Shown here one piece after another: positions 1-56,704 of a DNA stretch of 64,000 bases (its first letter is position 1; every line of letters begins with the position of its first letter). Made by a program: the position numbers and the translations under genes. The DNA is taken from contig JAHLWZ010000636.1 in NCBI GenBank assembly GCA_020536535.1, positions 62,001-126,000 of the forward strand, in the 5' to 3' direction. This stretch comes from Pelomyxa schiedti. Lineage: Eukaryota; Protista; Evosea. Below the pieces are notes generated by a model. It searched no databases. It was not told the origin of the DNA and worked only from the letters and a program-made list of their open reading frames with translations.

Positions 1-157
1 AATTGGAGAAAATCCAAGAACAACTTGACAACCTCAGTTGAACACTATCCATATCCAACCCAAGACTAAACAAAACCTGTACTTTTCACGTCTTGCGTTC
101 TACAAAGTTTCATCATCCAATTTACAAACAGTGAAGTTGGTTCTTTTACTTTGAAAA

Positions 158-3100
158 ATGATGAACCCACCAACCACCGACGTCGTTTCGGGCAACCAAC
201 AGACACCTCCTGTCCCACAATTCAGTGTGTTGGCAGCCCCACCACCCCCAATGAAACCCAAGACCCTTGGGCGGGGTTCATTGACAGCCAGAACGCACGG
301 CACGGCAGCTGCACCCTCCCACAATTCGAAACCGGGTGCTGTGGAACACGTCAGTATGTTCGTTGTGTCGTGACACTGAGAGCCTGACTTTTTGTGCCTA
401 TTTTGTTGTTGTGGGATGTGTGCAGCACACAAGAGGTGCAGAATCGGTCCTGAGAAGCTAGAATGGGGAAGTGCCGAATCTGTCACCAGTGGAAAATCGG
501 GTGCTCGTGACGTCATATTCGTCACAATGCCAAAGGGCACAGTGATGGTCAAAGAAGTTGTGGAAGATGATTGGGTGGGTACAGCTACCCCACTTTTATC
601 TTCTACATGTCACTCACACTTTTTCAAAAAATAAAAATTAAAAACCACAACCAACAAATAAAACAAGCACTTCATCTTGGCAACTCAGCTGGCACACAGG
701 ATAGGTGTCAAAGTACCAGCTGTCAATTTAGTGGAAACTTCTTGCAGTGGTTGTTCCTATTTTCTATCAAATGCCTAATTTACAACACGATATAGAATGG
801 AATGAAATAAGTTCAGTAGTGGAGTCTTTAGACACTACAAGAGCGTGAGATTCATTCATGTGCATTCTCGAAATTTCTTAACTAGATAGAGAAAAGCAAA
901 GGAGGCCATTCCTTGTAATGGAATTGGCACCTGGCCAGCCCCTTGATACACTGACAAAATCAAAGCTCTCTGAAGTGTTCAACACAGTCAACACTCTTCA
1001 AGTACTATCCAAAAATCAAACTATTTAATGCTGTGAAGATATCATCACCAGAAATGCTCCACTATGCAACACAGAAGAATACCTACTTGCGACAATTTGG
1101 GAATTTGATGTTCTTTGATGCACTGTGCAACTCTAACAGGCTTCCTCTCTTGAATGGCAGAGAGTGCCAGTTGGGGGCAATCTTCTATGATAACTCTGAC
1201 GGAATCTGGGGAATTAATGGTTTCCTTCAACCCTTACCCCTCAACAAGGTTTGTACCACCTTCTTCCTTTCTGTTATCCCATGTCCATTTTTATTTCATA
1301 ATACCGGATTCCACAGCAACCGGACTATATTTCACAGTTATCTGAAACCCTCGGGGCCATGTCTAAGCATCCACAACGCTTGTGTGTAGAAATTGCTTCC
1401 ATGAAAGAGTTCCTGGGCGTGGAAATTGGCCTATCATCTCCAGTGGAATCATTTATTCAAGTTCAATTTGGAGTCATGGAGGCATTTGTCCGAGCTTGCG
1501 AATTGTACACGTCCTTCACTGATATTTTCGAGCAGATACAAGTGCAAGTAGTAACATGCAAATGTCTCCCACATAACAGTTCCCAAAGGCATCCCCCGAG
1601 TTTAACCAAAGTCTGAAGCTTGTCTGTATACCTTTCATACAAAATGCCTTGAATATCTGCCACGTCCACTATGACCAAGCAGTTGGAGTTTTGAAACATG
1701 TTAAGTTACTTATAATTTTCTTTCTTTTAAAATTGGCAGTGGCCCGCAGAGAGTGTCTGTATTGCAGAACACCCAACCTCAAGTACACGAACGGATGTAA
1801 AAATTCTGGTTATGCAAGAACGCTATGGTGGAGAAGATACTGCAGAAGTCTTGGATGAGCTGCTTTCTTCTTCCGACAAGTGTCATTGTGACATGTTAGT
1901 GCTGTTTTAATTTGTGCACAGTGCAGATAGAAAAACTGACATGGTCATTTTCCCTGAGCTCTGGCTTTGGAGTCATAGTGGTGGAATATCAGTGAAGCAA
2001 AAAGGCATTGCACAATTTGTACCAGTGGCAATCAAGTGTGTCTCTTTGTCCCCTCTTTCCATTCTTTTCACACTGTTTTCAAGGCATGCAGTCTTTATCG
2101 TTCTTGGAACGATGGAAGAGGTGGTTGTTGGTGGGGCACGGTATATCACATCTGTGATGCTGGGACCTGACGGCCAAATTGCAGGGTCGTACAGAAAACA
2201 AAGGCTCACGACTCTTTCACATGAACCAGGCACTGTTCCTGGAGTAAGCAATTATTGTTCTCTGTAAAACTGTTCATCATGTTTCCCAGGTCTTCACCAC
2301 ACCCTTTGGCAAAGTGGCCATTCTTATTTGCTTTGATGTCGAGAATGAAGATGTATTCAATGCCACAATGGCACTTGACCCTTTGTTGATACTAAACCCG
2401 GTCTTCATTCCATCACCCGACCCGCGATATTCTACACCAGCGGCACTTTGCAAATGGGCTGGTGAGTCGTGAATATTTCCTGTGGGACTCCCTTTTCATT
2501 TTCTGCTTTTAGTGGCAAGAGATTCAATGAGACGGAAATTTGAAGCCACAATGGGTGAAAAAATGACTCACCTTATTCGGTGTGACATGCCTTCCTCCCA
2601 CGGTATCTCAAGCAGTCTACCAGCTCTTTTGCTGTAGCCAACCACTCCCAGGGGCATTTGGCTCCAGTCAGTACATTGGACCTTATCACACAACAATGGC
2701 TCCATCACCCCTTGATTGCCACTTTTATGTGCATGCTGACACAACGATACAAAACTTCTGGAAAGGTTCTTCAATTCCACCTCATGGCCGCACTGCCAAA
2801 GTGAGAGTTATAATCACTCCGGTTAATTTACATTAATCACGCATGTTCAGGAAGACAACACGGGCAACCGTTACCTCTGCAGATTGCTGCAGGCACCAAC
2901 GGCCTCCCGAACACTTGCGATTTGTGGAAAAACCCTGGCCATAGTAACTGCTGACTCAAGTGCAGTGATGTATGTCGCCTTTCAGAAAATAGCGTCTCTC
3001 ATGATGTGGTGACAGGTTGTGGAGCACGGTTATAGCTCACAGTGTTGCTCAAGTTATTCCCCCAAGTTCGGGGGTGCATGTCTCGTGCATGTGCTTCATT

Positions 3101-4391
3101 CCACGAGTGCAGGTGCTGGTAGTATGCTGGGACAACCGAACTCTCAGCACAATACATATTACAATGGCAACCAACTCAGCTTCAGTTCAAACAAACCTTC
3201 TTGGAACTGCTCCCATGCCCGCTCTTGCTTGCTCTTGTGTAGTGCAAAATCCAAAATGTTTTTAAAAATGTCTGACATACCAATGACAGATACCTTTGGA
3301 GGAGACCAGATTTGTCGTAGGTACAGAGAATTATTTTTGCCCTCAATAAAACTGAACTTCACAGGCCATCTGGATGGAACGCTTTCTGCTTGGAAGATTG
3401 ATCCCTTTCTTGTGGTCTCTGTCTCACCCCATAACAGTGAAATTGTAGCTACTGTCAAGGTTGTCCTTCACTTTTGATTTCTGAAGATAACAAAGTTCAC
3501 AAGATTGATCGGGGAGGGTTATGTGTGATTTGGAAAGATGGGAGTGTTGGATTATTTTCCATTGAGAACGCTTCACTTCAAGTAAATTTTTCCGAATTTG
3601 GTTGTACTCCTTAAAAAAAAATAAACAGATCATTCAGTTACAACATCTTGATTTGCCCAGCTCCATAACAGCGGTTACCTGGAGTGATTCCAGACACCTC
3701 CTTCTTATTGGAACCTCCGCCGGGACTATCACTTTGGTTTCCACACAGCCGACTGTTCTTTTTGCAGAAGTGCAAATAGGTCATTTCACAATCACTGGCC
3801 TTATTGCGGTTTTTTTCCATTTTTTTCCCTTTTCCTTTTAACTTCGGCACACAGGTCCCTAACAGTGACTTTGTTGTTGTTAGTAACAACACCCGATACC
3901 ACAACCTGTACGGGATTGACCTGATGGAGCTGCAACAGAACCGCAGGGCCGAAGTCCAACACTTCTTCCCAAGCCACACTGCCCCAATCACATGCCTCAC
4001 CTCAGATACAAATTGTATCTGCAGTATGGACCAGACTGGCCTCACACAGATTCTGGAGTTCACACAAAACCAAGTCCCAACAGGAATCGCTACAACGCTT
4101 TGTTGTGGCCAAAAATGTAAGGGTGCTCCTTGTGAAAACCTTTTCTGAATCTTTTTTGGGTTATTAAAAATGAGGATGGAAAGCACCACGTTAGAGCAAA
4201 AAAGGGCCTGGTTCCAAAAAACTGGAAATCTTTTGATCTTTCCTTGTTTCTCTCAAGGGCACCTCAACCAGGCTGCTTGTGTGCCTTCTCTGGGTCTCTG
4301 CCTGCTCCACAACTGTTTTGCTTTGTTGAAGGAGCTGATTACATGGTGGTTGTGGTTTTCCTCACAGAGATGGAAACTAGTGGCTGATTAA
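158..4391 (+). CDS. Multi-exon protein: actin-fragmin-kinase-like (probable pseudokinase) domain + carbon-nitrogen hydrolase (nitrilase) domain + WD40-like repeats
   Basis: Spliced reading gives LEWGSAESVTSGKSGARDVIFVTMPKGTVMVK, ATQLAHRIGVKVPAV, PFLVMELAPG and LRQFGNLMFFDALCNSNRLP (AFK-like). It continues into VIFPE, YRKQ and ILICFD (nitrilase E-K-C triad), then SSITAVTWSD and SHTAPITCL (WD40-like). Start and stop are inferred. Confidence 0.65.
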
Positions 4392-4470
4392 ATAATCAAC
4401 AGACCGGAACGCTGTACTTTTCGTTGTCGTCGCTCAGGATCGGCGGTCTGGTGTTTTTTGAATCCAGCCA
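4381..4470. mobile_element. Short imperfect-palindromic MITE-like element, copy A
   Basis: TGGCTG...CAGCCA termini, inner CAGACCG/CGGTCTG inverted pair, AG on both flanks. Homologous to 51818-51894 and 54130-54214. Confidence 0.5.
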
Positions 4471-4491
4471 AGTTCCTTCCAAAGAAAAATC

Positions 4492-6541
4492 ATGAAGTGC
4501 GCTGCCTACAGCTATGCTCTCGGTTTTGAGTCGCGAGGGATGTCGGCAACAGCTATATCAATGAGATGGAACCTAGACACACTTCTGTGTGAGTACGTTA
4601 AAAAACCACGATTATAGCAGCTGGTTTTTGTCTCTTTACATGTCTTACAGTTGTTGGAGGAAGCCGCAGGGGTGTCTCGGGCACCGATTCCACTGTGCGG
4701 CTTTTCGACACAACGTCGCATAAGGTGTCAAAAGTGTGCAGCACGGTGGACGTCACTCGACCTTTGGATGCAGTGGAATCCTGTATGTGAATGCCATTAG
4801 TCCCAACAAAATATTAAACCACTGAAATGCCATACCTCTCGTAAAATGCACCATGTGAAATAATACTCAGGTAGGTGTCTACATGCCAAAAGAAAACCAA
4901 GTGTATATGATCGGTCGCCTGCCCTGTGGGGCCATATCATTGGACATTGCAACGGGTGCAATTAATAAACTCGAAATTTCTGGACATCCACCGCCCATAA
5001 CACACGGCTGTGCAGGTAATTTTTCTTTTATTTTCTCCTCTTCTTATACTGCGCAGTCACAGTTCTCTCTGACCATGAGATCGCTGTCTTTGGCGGAATA
5101 AACGACTCCACCAACACACTTTCAAATGACTTTCATGTGTTGAATACTCAAATCATGGTAACGTAGGAGGCATTCGTATCGAAGCATGATAAATTATACA
5201 GGAATGGAAAAACTACATCCTTCCAGATCCCCCACTTCCACGATACAAAGCAGCCTCTGTTCTTGTGAATGACTTCCACCTTCTTATCCATGGTGGCAGG
5301 TGTTTTTTATGAACAGATCACTTTTTTTTTATGTGTCCACTAAGTCTTTTTCAGGCAAACCACTGCTGACTCGGTGGCGTCGATGCTTGCTCATTCAATT
5401 GAATGGAGATTTCCCTCAAGGTGGAACCCGGTTCCCGAAAGTGTGAGTGCGCATAGCCGAGCTGGTCATTCAATAACTAGTGTCGGCGGAGTACCTGTAA
5501 TGTTTGGGGGATGGGCCGGTACTGTCCAAGACGAAAGGTGCGAGTAGCGAATTTTTCCCTATTTTTCCTACTTTTTTTTAGAGAATGGGGTGCACTTGGC
5601 GATGTCCGAGCACTACAAGACTTCAATTCTGATACACTAGCGAGATGGGAGCAAGTGAACATAGTTGGAACCGTGATACCACCTCGTGACTGTCATGCCG
5701 CGGCAGTACTTCCATTTCTTCACTTCCTTTGCCCTAATGTGGGACTTCCTTTTAGGCCAGTTCTGACTCCTTGTGGATAAGCTGTGGAGTTGGTCCGACA
5801 TTTGAATACTGGCAAGACATTAACAGAATTTGCCTCAGGAGATACGTAGCTGTTCCCCCCTTAAGTGTACTGGCAGGAGGGACCCTTGTACAAACCCTGA
5901 CTAAGACCACTGCCAGCAAGAAGCTCGTTCATGCCCTAAAATACAAGAAAGAAGAATGGGATGAACGGCAGAAAGCTCAAGTATTACAAGAAGAAGAATT
6001 GCACAAAATGATTACCACTGTTATGGAGGAGCGAAATATGGTGTTGATCAAAAGGGGAGTCAGAGAACTGCAGGAAGAGCATCCACCCGGAGCACACACC
6101 ATGGCAGCTGAGGGGGTGAACAGACCGAGAAGTACCTCTGCGTTGGAGATAAGGTGTGGTTGCCTTGGGGTATTCTTAGGAAGAATCTTTCCTCCGCAAA
6201 CACCTGAGGAGCTACTTCTTGGGGAAGAAGAAAAGCTCCGAGAATTGCGTGAAAGATGTGAAAACATCAAAGCACTGCACACTCAACAACTAACAGAGCT
6301 CAAAGAGTGGGAAACACGGCACACACAACAAGAGGCATCTATGATCACCACTGTGCTACGAAAAATCCTCTCGGATATGTTTCCCAACAGAAATATCTCA
6401 GAGGCATTGATTGAAACTCTGGAATTCGAATGGCGAGACCAAATATTGTACCCCCCCATACCCGAATCACATACCACAACCGATCCCAGTGTTGTATCCA
6501 ACCAACAGAACGACCACCCCACAGCACCACACCACACTTAA
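4492..6541 (+). CDS. Kelch-repeat protein with C-terminal coiled coil
   Basis: Kelch-type segments VVGG, IAVFGG, ILIHGG, PPRDCHAAAV and LWISCG; E/K/Q-rich helical tail in ORF 5771-6541. Confidence 0.65.
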
Positions 6542-12544: not shown

Positions 12545-14623
12545 ATGGTGTGTTGTGGAGGAGTGCTTATTGCTCTGGGCCTTGCTTCGTTGGGTTTCTT
12601 TGTCCAGGCCTTGTTCTGTGTTGGGGTGTGTATTTTTTGGGGGGCAATCGGCAAGTGAAACTTTTTACTTTTGTAACTGGGGTTGTAACAACCAGAGTTT
12701 CGCAATGCAGTTGCTTGACTATGCCAACAAATGGCGACTTGTTCGCCAAGCTGCCAAGAAGCAGGCCAACTTCGTTCAAATTCAGAGGGCTCTCCTGCAG
12801 TCAATCCTGCAAAGAAGCTGCGCAAACGGGGGTTGCGATTTCGCACGCAAGCACAGGATCATGATGGCAAACGATGGTGTGTGCACGATGGAGCAATTCA
12901 GAGCCAGAATTCCGCTGTGCACTTATTCGGACATTGCTGCGGATGTTGACAAGGTGGCACAGACTGGCTGCAAGTCCTCTTTGTGCTCGGATCCTGTTAT
13001 TTTTCTTACTGCTACAACTGGTTAGTACTATTTTTACTAGTATTAATTTTGTAAGTAGCGGGGGGAACTTCTAATTGTTGCCTCTATTGTATAACTGCAT
13101 GTTTGTAATTCTCAAGGAACAACTGGGCCTCAGAGACTGGTTCCAGTAACCAAGATTGACATTGACAAGGTGAGGACCTCATCTTATCGGGCAGTCTACA
13201 ACCCCAGGTCCCTGGGTTTGTTCCTGGCTATCAACACCCAGCAGGGGGTGAAAAAGAGCCCTGGAGGAATCACTCAGGGTGCAGTGGGTCCAATAACTAT
13301 TTCAAGGATGAGACACTGGCTTCCATTTGTGTCAGCATCACCTTTTGCAGTCTATCAAGTATTTACTTCCAGCCCAATCTGTTGACGTTGATTTACTTAG
13401 TTTGAAAGGCAGCGGAGTGGGTGGAACCGGCAATGTACCTTCACTCCTTGTGGGCATTGAGAAGCTCCAACAAGGTTGTTTGTCTGACAATTCCATTTGC
13501 CGGAATGCTTCACTCCTTCTTTTCAGTCATGATTCGAGACTGGGACAACCTCATTTTTGACGTGGAACACGGCACTCTGCACCGCGAAGTTCCACCTCCT
13601 CAACTCAGTCACGCACCAATGCCCTCTCACGCTTCAGTATTAAGCGCTTACGGATCGAAAGTCCCACCAGGGATGCCCGGCTGGGTTCACACTGTGTTCC
13701 CAAGGCTCAAATTGGTTGTGGCCAATGTTCCAAATCCAGCTCTGAGATATGTCAGTGAATTGGAGAAATGGTTTGGAGATGGAATACAGTTCAGACCGCT
13801 CATGTACGGAGCATCAGAATGTGTCATGGCACTTCCTCCTCCAAGCAGCACCTTCAAAGAAAACAAATTCCGGCTTCTTGCTGACGCTGCTTTTTTTGAA
13901 TTCCTGCCCGTGGATGAAGAAGAAGCCAAACGATGCGCGGGGACTGGTGGAGCCATTTTGCCACAGGAGGGTGTTGTTGGGCACATTTACGAAATGGTTC
14001 TGACAAACTTCTCTGGGTTGTGGAGATACCGCATTGGAGATGCCATTCAGTTGGTTGGATTTGAAGGTCAATGCCCAGAGGTTAGTTTCCACCCTTTTTC
14101 TTATCCATGTGTTCATCTTGTGTTGCAACAGATAAAATTTGCGTATAGAGTCGGATCCGTTCTGAGCATCTTCGGCGAGAACATCAATGAGATTCACCTT
14201 CGCAAAATAATGGCCACTGTGTTTGGATCCAACGTTGTGGACTTCACATTCTTCCAAGATGATACTGCGAGCCGGTACCATGCTTATGTTGAACTGAACT
14301 CTCCTCTTGACACTGAGGCAGTACGCACCTTCTCACGACCGTCGTATCACAACTGACCACCTTCAACAAATAAAAAGGTGAGCGGACTGAGTGACAAGAT
14401 GGACCAGGCCATCAGACAAACAGTTTACAACTGCAGACTCTACCCAATCAAGAAGCCCTTTGTGATGATTGTGAAGCCCGGCACCTTCGCAGCACTGACA
14501 TCCCACATTCAAAGGACCACTCTGAGCCAAGCAAAAGTACCCCCGAGACTCACGAACCCCACCCACATCAATCTCCTCAATGACAATGTCACCCAACAGT
14601 GCCTCGACTCAAAAACGAACTAA
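12545..14623 (+). CDS. GH3-family acyl-acid amido synthetase, copy 1
   Basis: TTGTTG P-loop, YGASE and LWRYRIGD adenylation motifs, QAKVPR-like C-terminus, hydrophobic N-terminus. Confidence 0.9.
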
Positions 14624-49621: not shown

Positions 49622-51767
49622 TCAACCACTTACATGAATGACGTTGTCATTGAGGAGTTTGATGTGGGCAACGTTTTTGACCCTCGGTGGAATTTTTGCT
49701 TGGCTCAGAGTGGACATTTGAATGTGGGATGTCAGCGATGCGAAGGTGCCGGGCTTCACAATCATCACCAAGGGCTTCTTGATTGGGTAAAGTCTGTAGT
49801 TGTAAACTGTTTGTCTGATGGCCTGGTCCATTTTCTCACTCAGCCCACTCACCTTTTTTTATTCATTTGAAAGTTAGTGAATGAGAACAGAGCCTCACGT
49901 TGTGGGAGAATTCAAGAATTTGAGTACTTACTGTTTCCGTGTCAAGAGGAGAGTGCAGTTCCACATAAGCATGATACCTACTTACAGTATCGTCTTGGAA
50001 GAATGTGAAGTCTACAACGTTGGATCCAAACACAGTGGCCATTATTTTGCGAAGGTGAATCTCATTGATGTTCTCACCGAAGATGCTCAAAACGGAGCCC
50101 ACTCTATACGCAAATTTTATCTGCAAACTCAAAGAGTGAGCGAAGAATTGACAGTTGCAGGAATGGAGAAGAAAAAAGGAGTGAGAACGAACCTCTGGGC
50201 ATTGACCCTCAAATCCAACCAACTGAATGGCATCCCCAATTCGGTATCTCCACAACCCAGAGAAGTTTGTCAGAACCACTTCGTAAATGTGTCCAACAAC
50301 ACCCTCTTGTGGCAAAATGGCTCCACCAGTCCCCGCACATCGTTTGGCTTCTTCTTCATCCACAGGCATGAATTCAAAAAAAGCAGCATCAGCAAGAAGC
50401 CGGAATTTGTTTTCTTTGAAGGTGCTGCTTGGAGGAGGAAGTGCCATGATACATTCCGATGCTCCGTACATGAGTTCTCTGAACTGTATCCCATCTCCAA
50501 ACCATCTCTCCAATTCACTGACATATCCCAGTGCTGGATTCGGAACATTGGACACAATCAAGTTGAGCCGTGGGAAAGCGTTCTGAACCCAACCAGGCAT
50601 CCCTGGTGGAACTCTCGATGCGGAGGCCCTCAACGCGGAAGCGTGAGAAGGCATTGGTGCGTGACTGAGTTGAGGAGGTGGAACTTCGCGGTGCAGAGTT
50701 CCGTGTTCCACGTCAAAGACGAGGCTGTCCCAGTCTCGAATCATGACTGAAAAGAAGGAGTGAAGCATTCCGGCAAACGGAATTGTCAGACAAACGACGT
50801 CGCGGTAACTTCTCAAAGCCCACAAGGAGTGAAGGTACATTGCCGGTTCCACCCATTCTGCTGCCTAAAAGAAACCTCTGTCAAAGTCAATCGAATGGTT
50901 TGGAAATAAATACTTGATAGACTGCAAAAGGTGATGCTGACAGAAAAGGGATCAAGTTCTTCACTCTGAGGACTATAATGGGGCCCACTGCACCCTGAGT
51001 GATTCCTCCAGGGCTCTTTTTCACCCCCTGCTGAGTATTGATATTCATGTACAACCCCATGGACTTAGGGTTGTTACTGGCCATATAAGCGCCAGTCATA
51101 CACTTGTCAACGTCAATCTTGGTTACTGGAACCAATCTCTGAGGCCCAGTTGTCCCTTTGACAAAAAAAAAAAAAAACCCAAGCATCAGTACGCCAGAAA
51201 CGTAAGCATGCGGCCACTTCCCCTCGTCTCACTAATTTGAATGTGTGGTGCTAATACAAAACAGTTACCGGTTGTTGCAGTCAGCAAAGAAATAGGATCC
51301 GAGCACAAAGAGGACTTGCAGCCAGTCTGTGCCACTTTGTCAACATCCGCAGCAATGTCCGAATAAGTGCACAGTGGAATTCTGGCTCTGAATTGCTCCA
51401 TCGTGCGCACACCATCGTTTGCCATCATGATTCTGTGCTTGCGGGCGAAATCGCAACCCCCGTTCGCGCAGCTTCTTCGCAGGATTGACTGCAGAAGATC
51501 CCTCTGAACTTGAACGAAGTTGGCCTGGTTCTTGACAATTTGGTGAGCAAGGCGCCGTCTGTTGGCGCGATCAACCAACTGCATGGCGATGACCTGGAAA
51601 TTACAATGGCGGAGAGTCATCCAATGCGAAAAGTTGAAACCCAAAAAGAATGGGGAAGAAAGGAAACCACTCACCCCAACGCGGAACAGAGCATTCACAA
51701 CGCTTTGCCTGAAGATGAAGACCAACGAAACAACACCAAGAGCAGTCAGCACTCCACAACACACCAT
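49622..51767 (-). CDS. GH3-family acyl-acid amido synthetase, copy 2
   Basis: Same motifs and exon structure as copy 1; reading frame intact. Confidence 0.9.
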
Positions 51768-51817
51768 CCGGCTTTTCCAGAATTTAGTTGTTTTTACACT
51801 GAAAACTCGACGCGATC

Positions 51818-51894
51818 TGGCTGGAATAAAATAATCAACAGACCGGAACGCTGTACTTTTCGTTTGGATCGGCGGTCTGGGGTTTTTTCAGCCA
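51818..51894. mobile_element. MITE-like element, copy B (internal deletion)
   Basis: TGGCTG...CAGCCA termini, TC on both flanks, shares AAATAATCAACAGACCGGAACGCTGTACTTTTCGTT with copy A. Confidence 0.5.
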
Positions 51895-52024
51895 TCTTTT
51901 GATTGAACCGTTGTTGAAAGTGAGGAATCTCCGGCCTCGCGGAACTACATTCAGAAGAAAATCACTTTCGAGAAGGCTACTTTAAGTATGTTTCCCGAAC
52001 AGCAGTGATTGTGTTGTGGTGCAG

Positions 52025-54121
52025 TCAACCACTTACATGAATGACGTTGTCATTGAGGAGTTTGATGTGGGCAGCGTTTTTGACCCTCGGCGGAATTTTT
52101 GCTTGACTCAGAGTGGACATTTGAATGTGGGATGCCAGTGACGCAAACGTGCCGGGCTTCACAATCATCACCAAGGGCTTCTTGATTGGGTAAAGTCTGC
52201 AGTTGTAAACGGTTTGTCTGATGGCCTGGTCCATTTTCTCACTCAGTCCACTCGCCTTGTTTTGTTTGTTGTGGAACGTTATCATTGGATGAATTGGAAG
52301 TTCAGTTGCTTACTGCTTCAGTGTCAAGAGGAGAGTTCAGTTCAACATAAGCATGATACCGGCTCGCAGTATCATCTTGGAAGAATGTGAAGTCTACAAC
52401 GTTGGAACCAAACACAGTGGCCATTATTTTGCGAAGGTGAATCTCATTGATGTTCTCACCGAAGATGCTCAAAACGGAGCCCACTCTATACGCAAATTTT
52501 ATCTGCAAACCCAAAGAGTGAGCGAGGAATTGACAGTTGCAGGAAAAAAAAAAGGATGAAGGATGAATGGAGAAGAAAAAAGGAGTGAGAACGAACCTCT
52601 GGGCATTGACCCTCAAATCCAACCAACTGAATGGCATCCCCAATGCGGTATCTCCACAACCCAGAGAAATTTGTCAAAACCACTTCGTAAATGTGTCCAA
52701 CAGCACCCTCTTGTGGCAAAATGGCTCCACCAGTCCCCGCACATCGTTTGGCTTCTTCTTCATCCACAGGCATGAATTCAAAAAAAGCAGCATCAGCAAG
52801 AAGCCGGAATTTGTTTTCTTTGAAGGTGCTGCTTGGAGGAGGAAGTGCCATGATACATTCCGATGCTCCGTACATGAGTTCTCTGAACTGTATCCCATCT
52901 CCAAACCATCTCTCCAATTCACTGACATATCCCAGTGCTGGATTCGGAACATTGGACACAATCAAGTTGAGCCGTGGGAAAGCGTTCTGAACCCAACCAG
53001 GCATCCCTGGTGGAACTCTCGAGGCGGAGGCCTCAACGCGGAAGCGTGAGAGGGAATTGGTGCGTGACTGAGTTGAGGAGGTGGAACTTCGCGGTGCAGA
53101 GTTCCGTGTTCCACGTCAAAGATGAGGCTGTCCCAGTCTCGAATCATGACTGAAAAGAAGGAGTGAAGCATTCCGGCAAATGGAATTGAAAGACAAACGA
53201 CGTCGCGGTAACTTCTCAAAGCCCACAAGGAGTGAAGGTACATTGCCGGTTCCACCCATTCTGCTGCCTTAAATACGACTCTGTCAAAGTCAATCGAATG
53301 GTTTGGAAATAAATACTTGATAGACTGCAAAAGGTGATGCTGACACAAATGGAAGCCTGTGTCTTCTCTTGAAAACAGTTATTGGGCCCACTGCACCCTG
53401 AGTGATTCCTCCAGGGCTCTTTTTCACCCCCTGCTGGGTGTTGACAGTCAAGCACAGCCCCATGGACTTAGAGTTATAGATTGACACATACGTTGCAGTG
53501 ATCCACTTGTCGATGTCAATCTTGGTTACTGGAACCAATCTCTGAAGCCCAGTTGTTCCTTGATAAGAACATAAGTAAGACAGCAATATAAATGCGTGTC
53601 GGCCTTCCAGCAACACCCACCGGTTGTTGCAGTCAGCAAAGAAACAGGATCCGAGCACAAAGAGGACTTGCAGCCAGTCTGTGCCACTTTGTCAACATCC
53701 GCAGCAATGTCCGAATAAGTGCACAGTGGAATTCTGGCTCTGAATTGCTCCATCGTGCGCACACCATCGTTTGCCATCATGATTCTGTGCTTGCGGGCGA
53801 AATCGCAACCCCCGTTCGCGCAGCTTCTTCGCAGGATTGACTGCAGAAGATCCCTCTGAACTTGAACGAAGTTGGCCTGGTTCTTGACAATTTGGTGAGC
53901 AAGGCGCCGTCTGTTGGCACGGTCCAGCGACTGTATGGCGAATACCTGACAAGACAAAAAAAATAAGCAGTGACAGTTACCAAGGCGAATAAACCGCGAA
54001 AAGAAAGTACCAGAAGAAACCACTCACCCCAACGCGGAACAGAGCCACGCACAACGCTTTGTCTGAAGATGAAGCACAACAAAACAACACCAAGAGCAGT
54101 CAGCACTCCACAACACACCAT
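52025..54121 (-). pseudogene. GH3-family copy 3, tandem duplicate of copy 2 with apparent frameshifts
   Basis: 1-nt deletion at 53031-53032 (CC versus CCC at 50627-50629) inside a coding exon; +1 nt in exon 1 near 54046. Confidence 0.6.
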
Positions 54122-54129
54122 CCCGTAAA

Positions 54130-54214
54130 TGGCGGAATAAAATAATCAATGGACCGGAACGCTGTCGTTATCGTCGCTCAGGATGGGCGGTCTGGTTTTT
54201 TTTTTATTCCCACT
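54130..54214. mobile_element. MITE-like element, copy C (diverged)
   Basis: TGGCGGAATAAAA...TTTTATTCC ends; shares GACCGGAACGCTGT and TCGTCGCTCAGGAT with copy A. Confidence 0.45.
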
Positions 54215-54449: not shown

Positions 54450-56704
54450 ATGGCAACGGATGCCCGTTTGTGCCCCATCTGCGGGCGAGCGTTTTTCCAC
54501 ACCGGAGGGTGCCAGCCCTTGGCCTGGCCCGCCTGCGGCCACCACGCGTGCACGTGCTGCGCCGTGGCGATGGCCCACACAGCCCTCCTTGCCTCCCTCC
54601 CGCGTCCCCCACCGCGTCTCGTCTCTGCGGCCGCCGCGACGCCCACTATCCCTTCTGCGTCGGCCTCTGCTTCTGTTTCCTTTGTCATTCATTGCCCGCA
54701 GTGCAATGGAGGTGCGAAGCTCACCGTTGACGACATTTCGTCATCAAGGTAATGGGAGATTAGTAATTATGGGTGGGGGTCAGACTGTTGCCGCACTATC
54801 TCTATCTCATTAAGCAGTTAGCACAAAATTAACTCTTAGGTAGGTGCGTCGAAGAGGCTGTTGTGGCGGTGCTGAAAACAGATAGCAGTCTTTTACAGGA
54901 GAGCGAGGCCTTGAGGGCGCCACAGCTCGAAGCGGAATCGCCCCTGTGTGCCGCAGAGTGCGGAAAGAAGGCCACATTCTTATGCGTTCAGTGCAACAAT
55001 GCGCCGCTGTGCGAGGAGTGCTTCCCGGGATTGCACAAGTTCCAGTTCCAGAAGGGCCACACCAAGAAGAGCATCGGTGAGATGGCGGCGATAAGAGACG
55101 CGGAGAGGGTCCTCAACACATCCAATTGCAGGGAGCACTTTCAGCCGCTCACCATTTTCTGCACACAATGCGATACTCTGAGCTGTGTTGTGTGTGGGCA
55201 GTTTGGGAAGCACAGAGATCACTCTGCCAAGTGCGTGCCTGTGGTCGAAATGAAGGAGAAGTTGATGGCGAAGTTGACCACAGTTTTGGATCAGTGTACA
55301 GCTTTGCAAAAGCGGATGAATGCTTCGGAGCAAGAAATAAGCCTTAAGTGCACAACTCTCGCTCAGAATTCTGGAGAAGTGGAGAAGTGTATCAACGCGT
55401 TTTTCGATTCATTGTTGGAGGACATTCAAAGAAGGAGGAATCAGCTACTCACACAGCTGAATCTTCTGCACTCCATCTCCTCAGAAAACCTAGAGATTCA
55501 GAGGCTCTCAACAAAAACTGCCAGGGAGTTCCTCCAGGCCCTGGCCCAGCAGAAACCACAAGCAGGGGAAACCTCTCCGAAAAATTCTTCGCCCCCTTCA
55601 CCCGGTAGTGCACTTCCAACCAGTGCTGATGCCGTTGTTGTTCTTCAAACCGAGGAACGAATCCAAGTTCTTCAGAACATCCTGAAAAGGCTCTCAGCCG
55701 AGAGCCTTGACCTCTCCCCGTGTTGTTCGCCAGTGTGGAAGTGGGAAGTGGATGACAGTTTGCTTAAGTCCCTCCAGAATATGTGCATCACAACAAATAT
55801 TCCAGTGAGCAAAGGTACTACAGTTCAAACTGTTGTGACCCAAAGTACCCCTGCGTTTTCAATCACGTTCACAACACTCAATGGGCACAACCAGGTTCCA
55901 CCAACTACAGTTGACTACACTTCTCCATATCAGAAGAGTGTCATACTGTCGGGTGGGATTCAAAAGTGGGTCGTTCCATCAAGTGGAAAGTACAAGATCA
56001 CCGCCGTTGGTCCGAGTGGTGGAAATAGTGCCTACTTTCATACTACGGGGGGCCTTGGTGCTGCCGCTGTATCAGTGGTGGAACTGAACGAGGGGACTAT
56101 CGTCAACATTCTGGTTGGGCAAGAAGGCGAGGGAGACAAGAGCACAGGGGGAGGAGGGGGAGGTACGTTCATTTGGGAGGCGAACGGAGACGAGGGGCCC
56201 CTCGTTTGTGCCGGAGGTGGTGGTGGTGCAGTACAGACGGCAGGCAAGGATGCCAGTGTGACACCAGACGGGACACACGGGAATGGGCTGACATCTGGGG
56301 GTGGCGTGAATGGCGGCGGTGGAACACCAAGCGACCCTCGCCAGCGGGCAGGGGGAGGAGCTGGCTGGCTATCCGATGGCTGCCAAGGGGAAGGGTACAC
56401 CATCAAAGCCGGGGGTGGTGTGTCCCCACTGCGAGGTGGTGGGGGTGGCACCTTCGGGGGGACCCAAGAGCGTGTTGGCAGCGGTGGGTTCGGCGGCGGT
56501 GGTGGAGGGCAGGGCCAGGGGGTAGCCCTTGGGGGCGGTGGGGGTGGCGGATACAGCGGCGGGGGGCCCGGGGCTCCCAATGGTTCACTGTTCCTGGGTG
56601 GGGGCGGTGGGGGTTCCTTCTGCAGTACCAAATGTCAGCAGACACACATGACAGTGTCCCAATCCAGAGGAAATGGCTCCGTCACCATCGAGAACCTAGC
56701 CTGA
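54450..56704 (+). CDS. TRIM-like protein (RING, two B-boxes, coiled coil) with C-terminal ALK/LTK-type glycine-rich domain
   Basis: CPIC..CGH..C..C..CPQC; CVQC..LCEEC..LH; CREH..FCTQC..CVVC..HRDH; GIQKWVVPSSGKYKITAVG and GGGGGTF. Confidence 0.85.

Follow-up and report, generated by a model that had tools for sequence, protein, structure and literature searches.

The question raised by a stretch of contig JAHLWZ010000636.1 (C636) of Pelomyxa schiedti, an organism whose identity was matched by NCBI protein names, is why three paralogous genes of the GH3 family resemble one another closely over much of their length and differ sharply in two short segments of one exon. The stretch, 64,000 nt long and referred to below as the window, carries copy 1 on the plus strand and, inverted with respect to it and about 35 kb distant, copies 2 and 3 in tandem on the minus strand. 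The original prediction, made from the sequence alone, held that these paralogs are hypervariable only in the predicted acyl-acid pocket, and invoked diversifying selection on substrate specificity and/or gene conversion that homogenises the scaffold while sparing or swapping a single specificity exon. It is suggested here that the locus is probably a case of ordinary concerted evolution, in which two weakly constrained, pocket-adjacent patches have been left unconverted or swapped.

Distribution of differences among the GH3 copies

The two patches lie in exon 3 and are separated by a short spacer. In copy 2 (49622..51767, minus strand), an intact gene of six exons encoding 583 aa, patch 1 comprises 21 codons (51040-51102), the spacer 20 codons (50980-51039), and patch 2 13 codons (50941-50979), all on the minus strand. 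The corresponding segments of copy 3 (52025..54121, minus strand), which has the six-exon layout of copy 2 and two frameshifts as assembled, are found at 53443-53505, 53383-53442, and 53344-53382 on the minus strand, and those of copy 1 (12545..14623, plus strand), an intact gene encoding 584 aa, at 13170-13232, 13233-13292, and 13293-13331 on the plus strand, within a stretch supported by RNA. The counts given in the original prediction were recovered exactly: copies 2 and 3 differ at one of the 136 residues from MPGW to QCPE (V/A), a stretch that starts just past the 1-nt deletion of copy 3 (about 53031), at 13/21 residues in patch 1, and at 9/13 in patch 2. Copy 2 differs from copy 1 at 12/21 and 9/13 residues, respectively. 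Across the genes, residue differences occupy 22/34 patch positions versus 18/513 elsewhere for copies 2 and 3 (Fisher p=4e-20), 21/34 versus 57/514 for copies 1 and 2 (p=3e-11), and 18/34 versus 55/513 for copies 1 and 3 (p=1e-8), and this clustering is far beyond chance. As the same patches are seen when copy 1, a gene that is different along its whole length and has RNA support, is set against each of the other two, the pattern does not depend on the pair of copies 2 and 3 alone.

The wording ‘hypervariable only’ describes copies 2 and 3 roughly and does not apply to copy 1, in which differences also cluster where exon 2 begins, in three parts of exon 4, and at the C-terminus. The variable unit also proved to be smaller than the single specificity exon proposed, consisting of two sub-exonic patches in exon 3, both ends of which are conserved together with the spacer. 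The residues that vary are mostly small or hydrophobic and are not typical surface residues, and the family-wide column entropy of the two patches is 3.2 and 3.4 bits versus a mean of 2.5. The 20-residue spacer is identical in all three copies, as had been noted, with silent differences at background level. In a fourth, divergent paralog, 19/20 spacer residues are kept despite saturated silent sites (synonymous divergence, dS, of 1.3-2.4), which points to constraint at the protein level, with no need for micro-conversion.

Silent sites and the question of selection

Exon models of the copies were derived by coordinates and were joined into spliced models solely for codon analysis. Between copies 2 and 3, third positions differ in 7/21 codons of patch 1 (p=3e-4) and 8/13 of patch 2 (p=4e-7) versus 31/513 in the rest, runs of 80 codons occur without any third-position difference, and the silent sites of the patches exceed those of the remaining sequence in divergence by a factor of 6-10. 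Nei-Gojobori estimates of dS reach 0.6-0.8 in patch 1 and are saturated for patch 2 of copy 2; the other exons give 0.05 for copies 2 and 3 and 0.2-0.25 for comparisons with copy 1. Expressed as proportions of silent (pS) and replacement (pN) differences, patch 1 of copy 2 has a pS of 0.42-0.48 and a pN of 0.26-0.35, and its patch 2 has a saturated pS of 0.84-0.89. Among codons whose amino acid is unchanged between copies 2 and 3, silent differences are present in 1/8 in patch 1, 3/4 in patch 2 (p=8e-4), and 28/495 in the background. The ratio pN/pS pooled over the patches is 0.49, 0.54, and 0.90 in the three pairs, the first two values being below 1 (p=0.01).

These values bear on a scenario in which the copies are recent duplicates whose acyl-acid pocket came under positive diversifying selection, gene conversion not being needed. 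The extreme concentration of the amino acid differences would fit such a history, as would the six replacement changes against one silent change in patch 2 of copies 1 and 3 (ratio 1.8, not significant) and the low share of silent differences in the unchanged codons of patch 1 in copies 2 and 3. However, silent and third-position divergence is itself strongly raised in the patches, the pooled pN/pS lies below 1, and the dN/dS (replacement to synonymous divergence) above 1 anticipated for the patches under diversifying selection was not found. Because the silent sites of the patches are unlike those of the rest of the gene, adaptive replacement hot spots on a young duplicate are disfavoured; moreover, recent duplication would not explain introns 2 and 5 and flanks that cannot be aligned, and the grouping of the copies switches along the gene. 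Recent duplication followed by positive selection is thus regarded as highly improbable.

A probable gene-conversion mosaic

The introns of copies 2 and 3 fall into two classes. Identity reaches 90% in intron 3 (z=11) and 97% in intron 4 (z=12), and in copy 2 both (50865..50913 and 50121-50192, minus strand) belong to one long tract homogenised with copy 3, which extends from about 50940 to 50000. For introns 2 and 5, as for the flanks on the 5' and 3' sides, the alignment of these two copies is no better than that of shuffled sequence. Against copy 1, intron 3 alone is recognisably similar. The grouping of the three copies at informative sites is likewise patchy. The pattern in which copies 2 and 3 agree prevails in exons 1, 2, 4, and 6, with a longest concordant run of 28 sites (permutation p=1e-4), whereas copy 3 sides with copy 1 at 15/22 informative sites of patch 2 (p=6e-7) and at 9/11 sites in the 3' end of exon 5 (p=2e-5); the longest run concordant between copies 1 and 3 is by itself borderline (p=0.07). 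Patch 2 of copy 3 is thus of the copy-1 type, and the site patterns of patch 1 are star-like, all three copies being mutually different.

Together, the silent sites, the intron mosaic, and the switching site patterns indicate old duplicates whose scaffold was homogenised by patchy, DNA-templated gene conversion, and the proposal of a scaffold kept uniform by conversion, with the variable part spared or swapped, was in this respect borne out. Under the reading preferred here, the coding scaffold of old paralogs would have been homogenised repeatedly by interlocus gene conversion templated by DNA, the exchange within the tandem pair (copies 2 and 3, dS about 0.05) being very recent and that involving copy 1 (dS about 0.2) older. 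Within exon 3, two short segments would have escaped this process and kept an older, near-saturated divergence, and patch 2 would have been exchanged between the lineages of copy 1 and copy 3. The patches would constitute the least constrained part of the family and would, by homology, flank the acyl-acid site, the spacer remaining invariant through strong constraint on its protein. Their persistence may be due to heterology that blocks conversion and/or to selection for different acyl substrates that removes converted forms.

Family placement and predicted structure

Homology searches and folding were performed with single exons or with the NCBI proteins P0001-P0004. Exon by exon, Pfam returned the GH3 N-terminal domain at 52.3 and 31.4 bits and GH3_M at 63.5-65.1 bits (cut-off 23.6), and GH3_C on exon 6 alone scored 22.0 bits, just below the cut-off of 23.6; all three GH3 domains (PF03321/PF23571/PF23572) are precomputed on the NCBI models P0001-P0003. 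Of the nucleotide-binding motifs, YGASE and YRIGD were both identified, together with the C-terminal catalytic Lys; the P-loop is present as well and ends in Arg in all four paralogs, at a family column that is 93% Lys. P0002, the model of copy 3, keeps the invariant family columns E255, Y312, G321, R324, Y325, P341, and K458, and its AlphaFold2 model, built from an alignment of 101 relatives, reached a mean pLDDT (predicted local distance difference test) of 89.6 and a pTM (predicted template modelling score) of 0.89. In Foldseek, plant GH3 enzymes account for all of the first 20 or more PDB matches, and PaaK-type and other acyl-CoA ligases come next; exon 3 alone gave no PDB match by sequence. 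The placement in the GH3 family of the ANL adenylating superfamily is secure, and the genes encode new members of this family, putatively active enzymes that would adenylate acyl acids and form amides.

A close kinship with the plant hormone-conjugating groups I-III was not found, the identity to plant structures being 21-24%. The best matches outside Pelomyxa reach about 32% identity or less, and the nearest relatives are located, where their context is readable, on intronless, densely packed contigs of bacterial type. One such bacterial relative, P0009 (L018, GCA_031551325.1 contig 1-4674), directly follows two genes of about 843 aa in which an ATP-grasp domain (RimK / D-Ala-D-Ala ligase-like) is fused to a GH3 domain, making three GH3-type genes in a row. 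Copies 1 and 2 begin with a hydrophobic N-terminal segment of 17 residues (mean Kyte-Doolittle hydropathy 2.2-2.6). A GH3-like enzyme characterised in bacteria, OlsH, links fatty acids with ornithine; given this precedent and the N-terminal anchor, the Pelomyxa enzymes may reasonably be guessed to act on an acyl substrate of the lipid type.

The acyl-acid pocket

In the predicted structure of copy 3, patch 1 forms the second half of the helix after the P-loop strand, a loop, and a strand, and patch 2 forms two short helices past the spacer. The patches were related to the pocket by sequence and profile alignments to plant GH3 PDB chains and by published contact or specificity residues, namely the inhibitor contacts of GH3.6 (PMC9894192), residues Arg130, Leu137, Val174, Leu175, Met337, Ala339, and Tyr344 of OsGH3.8 (PMC10747189), and the pocket and specificity residues of JAR1 (PMC12493201). 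In plants, the helix after the P-loop carries specificity residues, Arg130, Leu137, and Tyr134 in OsGH3.8 and GH3.6 (PMC9894192, PMC10747189). Arg130 of OsGH3.8 aligns with the first residue of patch 1, a position occupied by V, C, and W among the three copies; an adjacent 10-residue deletion, in which the register is ambiguous, covers Tyr134 and Leu137. Val174 and Leu175 correspond to invariant positions of the spacer, and Tyr179, Thr193, and Tyr195 to invariant positions in or beside patch 2. Phe184 aligns near the variable positions 7-8 of patch 2 and varies, and Tyr344 corresponds in exon 4 to I in copies 2 and 3 and to V in copy 1. The claim that the variable segments line the pocket is accordingly plausible for patch 1, given its first residue, and looser for patch 2, where the aligned pocket residues are mostly invariant. 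Judged from these alignments, patch 1 is a plausible counterpart of the specificity helix that follows the P-loop, and the short helices of patch 2 would more likely lie at the entrance of the channel.

Constraint and specificity in the patches

If the patches are not under positive selection, they could be segments of low constraint without a role in specificity, the rest of the gene being homogenised and the divergence of the patches blocking heteroduplex formation. Weak constraint would accord with the pooled pN/pS of 0.49-0.90, few regions of the family vary as much as exon 3 as a whole, and near patch 2 the positions aligned with plant pocket residues are invariant; the frameshifts of copy 3 and a 13-nt deletion in patch 1 of the fourth paralog would, in addition, suggest a family that is partly decaying. 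However, patch 1 coincides with the helix of experimentally demonstrated specificity residues in OsGH3.8 (Arg130, Leu137; PMC10747189) and JAR1 (PMC12493201), the small or hydrophobic character of the variable residues is unlike that of a surface, and a pN/pS significantly below 1 in two pairs implies that the patches are not free to drift. This reading is considered unlikely.

At the other extreme, the patches may form a two-part specificity cassette kept distinct by selection, with the 60-nt spacer as a recombination joint, that would yield combinatorial acyl-substrate pockets, for example for N-acyl amino acid lipids, in a membrane-anchored, bacterial-type GH3 family of an anaerobic, symbiont-bearing amoeba. 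Copy 3, which combines its own patch 1 with a patch 2 of the copy-1 type, would be an instance of such recombination among paralogs. The idea is considered rather improbable. A search of the genome as DNA and as protein revealed no extra exon-3 cassettes or donors beyond the four known genes.

Several observations weigh against the preferred interpretation of concerted evolution around two pocket-adjacent patches. The pocket assignment depends on alignments in which identity is 21-24% and the helix lacks 10 residues, and most of the plant pocket residues near patch 2 (Leu175, Tyr178, Tyr179, Thr193, Tyr195) align to invariant positions. With three close copies and one distant one, the boundaries and ages of the conversion tracts are rough. 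The genome is a hybrid SPAdes --sc assembly of Illumina and Nanopore reads from seven amplified cells, and a collapse of near-identical paralog tracts may exaggerate the 100% identity of copies 2 and 3. A redundant contig, C836, gives no allelic check. In the DNA runs X1 and X2, which are probably from the assembled sample and do not count as independent support, the exon-4 frameshift site of copy 3 is nearly without contig depth and is unconfirmed, and patch 2 of copy 3 is likewise unconfirmed, the sole contig there carrying the letters of copy 1.

Assembly and the state of the copies

The contrast could also be largely an artefact of the assembler, had it collapsed near-identical parts of the tandem and written them twice; just the most diverged patches would then survive as differences, and the frameshifts would be gap-filling errors. 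The type of assembly from amplified cells, the presence of a redundant contig that is 100% identical over 9 kb, the location of the exon-4 frameshift in a homopolymer with almost no contig depth in X1 and X2, and the absence of copy 3 patch 2 from these runs all lend themselves to this explanation. However, copy 1, about 35 kb off and 5-8% different throughout, shows the same patch pattern against both other copies, and its sequence is supported by an independent RNA contig. Scattered differences between copies 2 and 3 are retained within the similar tracts and were seen in run X2 (50279, 50292, 50307), and DNA contigs from two runs contain the extra nucleotide in exon 1 of copy 3. An assembly artefact is thus held to be very unlikely as the source of the pattern. 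The possibility that C836 is a second allele was considered and rejected, since it matches the window at 100% identity over the 9 kb surrounding copies 2 and 3 and shows no difference in the gene of copy 1. It represents a redundant contig without allelic information.

Copy 3, as assembled, looks like a recently broken gene. Its exon 1 has a +1 at about 54046 (94 nt versus 93), in a stretch covered without differences by 223-nt DNA contigs from two runs of one sample, and no alternative splice site that would rescue the exon-1 frame was found when the sequence was inspected by eye. Its exon 4 has a -1 at about 53031 in a C-run (CC for CCC on the plus strand; 671 nt versus 672), a homopolymer frameshift that may be a gap-filling error. 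One RNA contig with zero mismatches to copy 3 joins 52003-52122 to 52597-52654 of the window, that is, the end of exon 4 to the middle of exon 6; the junction is non-canonical, exon 5 is skipped, and three extra letters are present at the joint; either mis-splicing of a damaged copy or an artefact of assembly may be the cause.

A whole-genome Pfam GH3 scan found copies 1-3, the redundant C836, and the fourth paralog on contig C922, and no others. The fourth paralog (L017, C922:26500-33500) has about 62% protein identity. Its exon 3 (L017 3017-3245) is 13 nt shorter than that of copies 1-3, the deletion (L017 about 3090-3105) lying inside patch 1 and shifting the frame, and the hydrophobic N-terminal segment is not in frame with the ATG. 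Apart from this, exons 4-6 are intact, and exons 4 and 5 bear the mark of purifying selection (dN/dS about 0.06-0.2 at dS 1.3-2.4). Two of the four GH3 genes, copy 3 and the fourth paralog, therefore look recently broken, or mis-assembled.

Gene models and neighbouring features

The exons of copy 2 (minus strand) are located at 51767-51675, 51593-51269, 51155-50914, 50864-50193, 50120-49932, and 49852-49622, with a clean frame and GT-AG boundaries at all introns. Those of copy 3 (minus strand), whose boundaries were projected from copy 2, are at 54121-54028, 53945-53621, 53558-53317, 53267-52597, 52502-52314, and 52255-52025, and those of copy 1 (plus strand), again with GT-AG introns, at 12545-12625, 12696-13020, 13117-13358, 13409-14080, 14132-14320, and 14378-14623. 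A spliced RNA contig of 1676 nt fits copy 1, with piecewise mismatches of 30, 31 (+2 gaps), 56, and 9 versus expected values of 34, 34, 57, and 8, and supports its exon junctions, including that of exons 1 and 2. Copy 1 is thus transcribed and spliced, the patch-spacer-patch stretch included. The NCBI models P0001-P0004 are all faulty, either in or near exon 3 or at the N-terminus, the faults comprising N-terminal truncation, a retained intron piece, a skipped or out-of-frame exon 3, and an artificial intron across a frameshift. P0001 is an N-truncated model of copy 2, P0002 jumps the exon-4 frameshift of copy 3 by an artificial intron, exon 3 is mis-spliced in P0003, and P0004 exits exon 3 too early.

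A dispersed repeat of 46-50 nt with 7-nt inverted ends occurs at 51817-51864 and at about 54160-54210 of the window, preceding the start codons of copies 2 and 3, respectively, by roughly 45-60 nt; it is not found upstream of copy 1. At least 279 candidates were counted genome-wide at first look, of which 40 were scored and were 90-100% identical; the repeat reaches a contig depth of several thousand and is flanked by many different sequences. An element resembling a miniature inverted-repeat transposable element, or a promoter-proximal one, is a possible interpretation. Beside copy 3, an open reading frame of 613 aa (54863-56704, plus strand) starts with a Cys/His-rich, B-box-like region, continues with a coiled-coil-like middle part, and is very rich in glycine in its C-terminal third, and an unbroken run of about 75 T is found at 45885-45960.

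Significance and comparison with known systems

The locus mainly illustrates how concerted evolution can make pocket-adjacent segments seem hypervariable without positive selection, and it also exposes faulty public gene models for all four paralogs. If the patches set substrate choice, the genes would constitute a natural experiment on the change of acyl specificity in non-plant GH3-type enzymes, copies 1 and 2 being two ready-made variants for a comparison of acyl specificity.

The closest structural counterparts are the plant GH3 acyl acid amido synthetases, including AtGH3.15 (6AVH/6E1Q), AtGH3.6 (7VKA), OsGH3.8 (7DK8), and JAR1 (4EPL). The Pelomyxa copies share their two-domain fold (Foldseek E about 1e-31 to 1e-33, TM, the template modelling score, up to 0.75 to GH3.15), the motifs YGASE/YRIGD, and the C-terminal catalytic Lys, and the specificity residues of the plant enzymes are located on the post-P-loop helix, at the site of Pelomyxa patch 1. 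In contrast to the plant enzymes, to which they are only 21-24% identical, the Pelomyxa copies have a post-P-loop helix about 10 residues shorter, a P-loop ending in Arg, and a hydrophobic N-terminal anchor. A non-plant GH3 enzyme that joins fatty acids to amino acids, such as OlsH, would by analogy suit a membrane-anchored Pelomyxa enzyme, whereas the five spliceosomal introns of each Pelomyxa gene and the lineage-specific character of the family set them apart from OlsH and other GH3 genes of bacterial type. With respect to their evolution, the genes may be compared with the primate L/M opsin genes, in which gene conversion homogenises the paralogs and a few short, function-determining segments stay different. 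The Pelomyxa paralogs would be analogous in being homogenised while short segments stay distinct; unlike the opsins, some of their introns are far more diverged than the exons, the pN/pS of the distinct segments is below 1, and one copy is seemingly broken.

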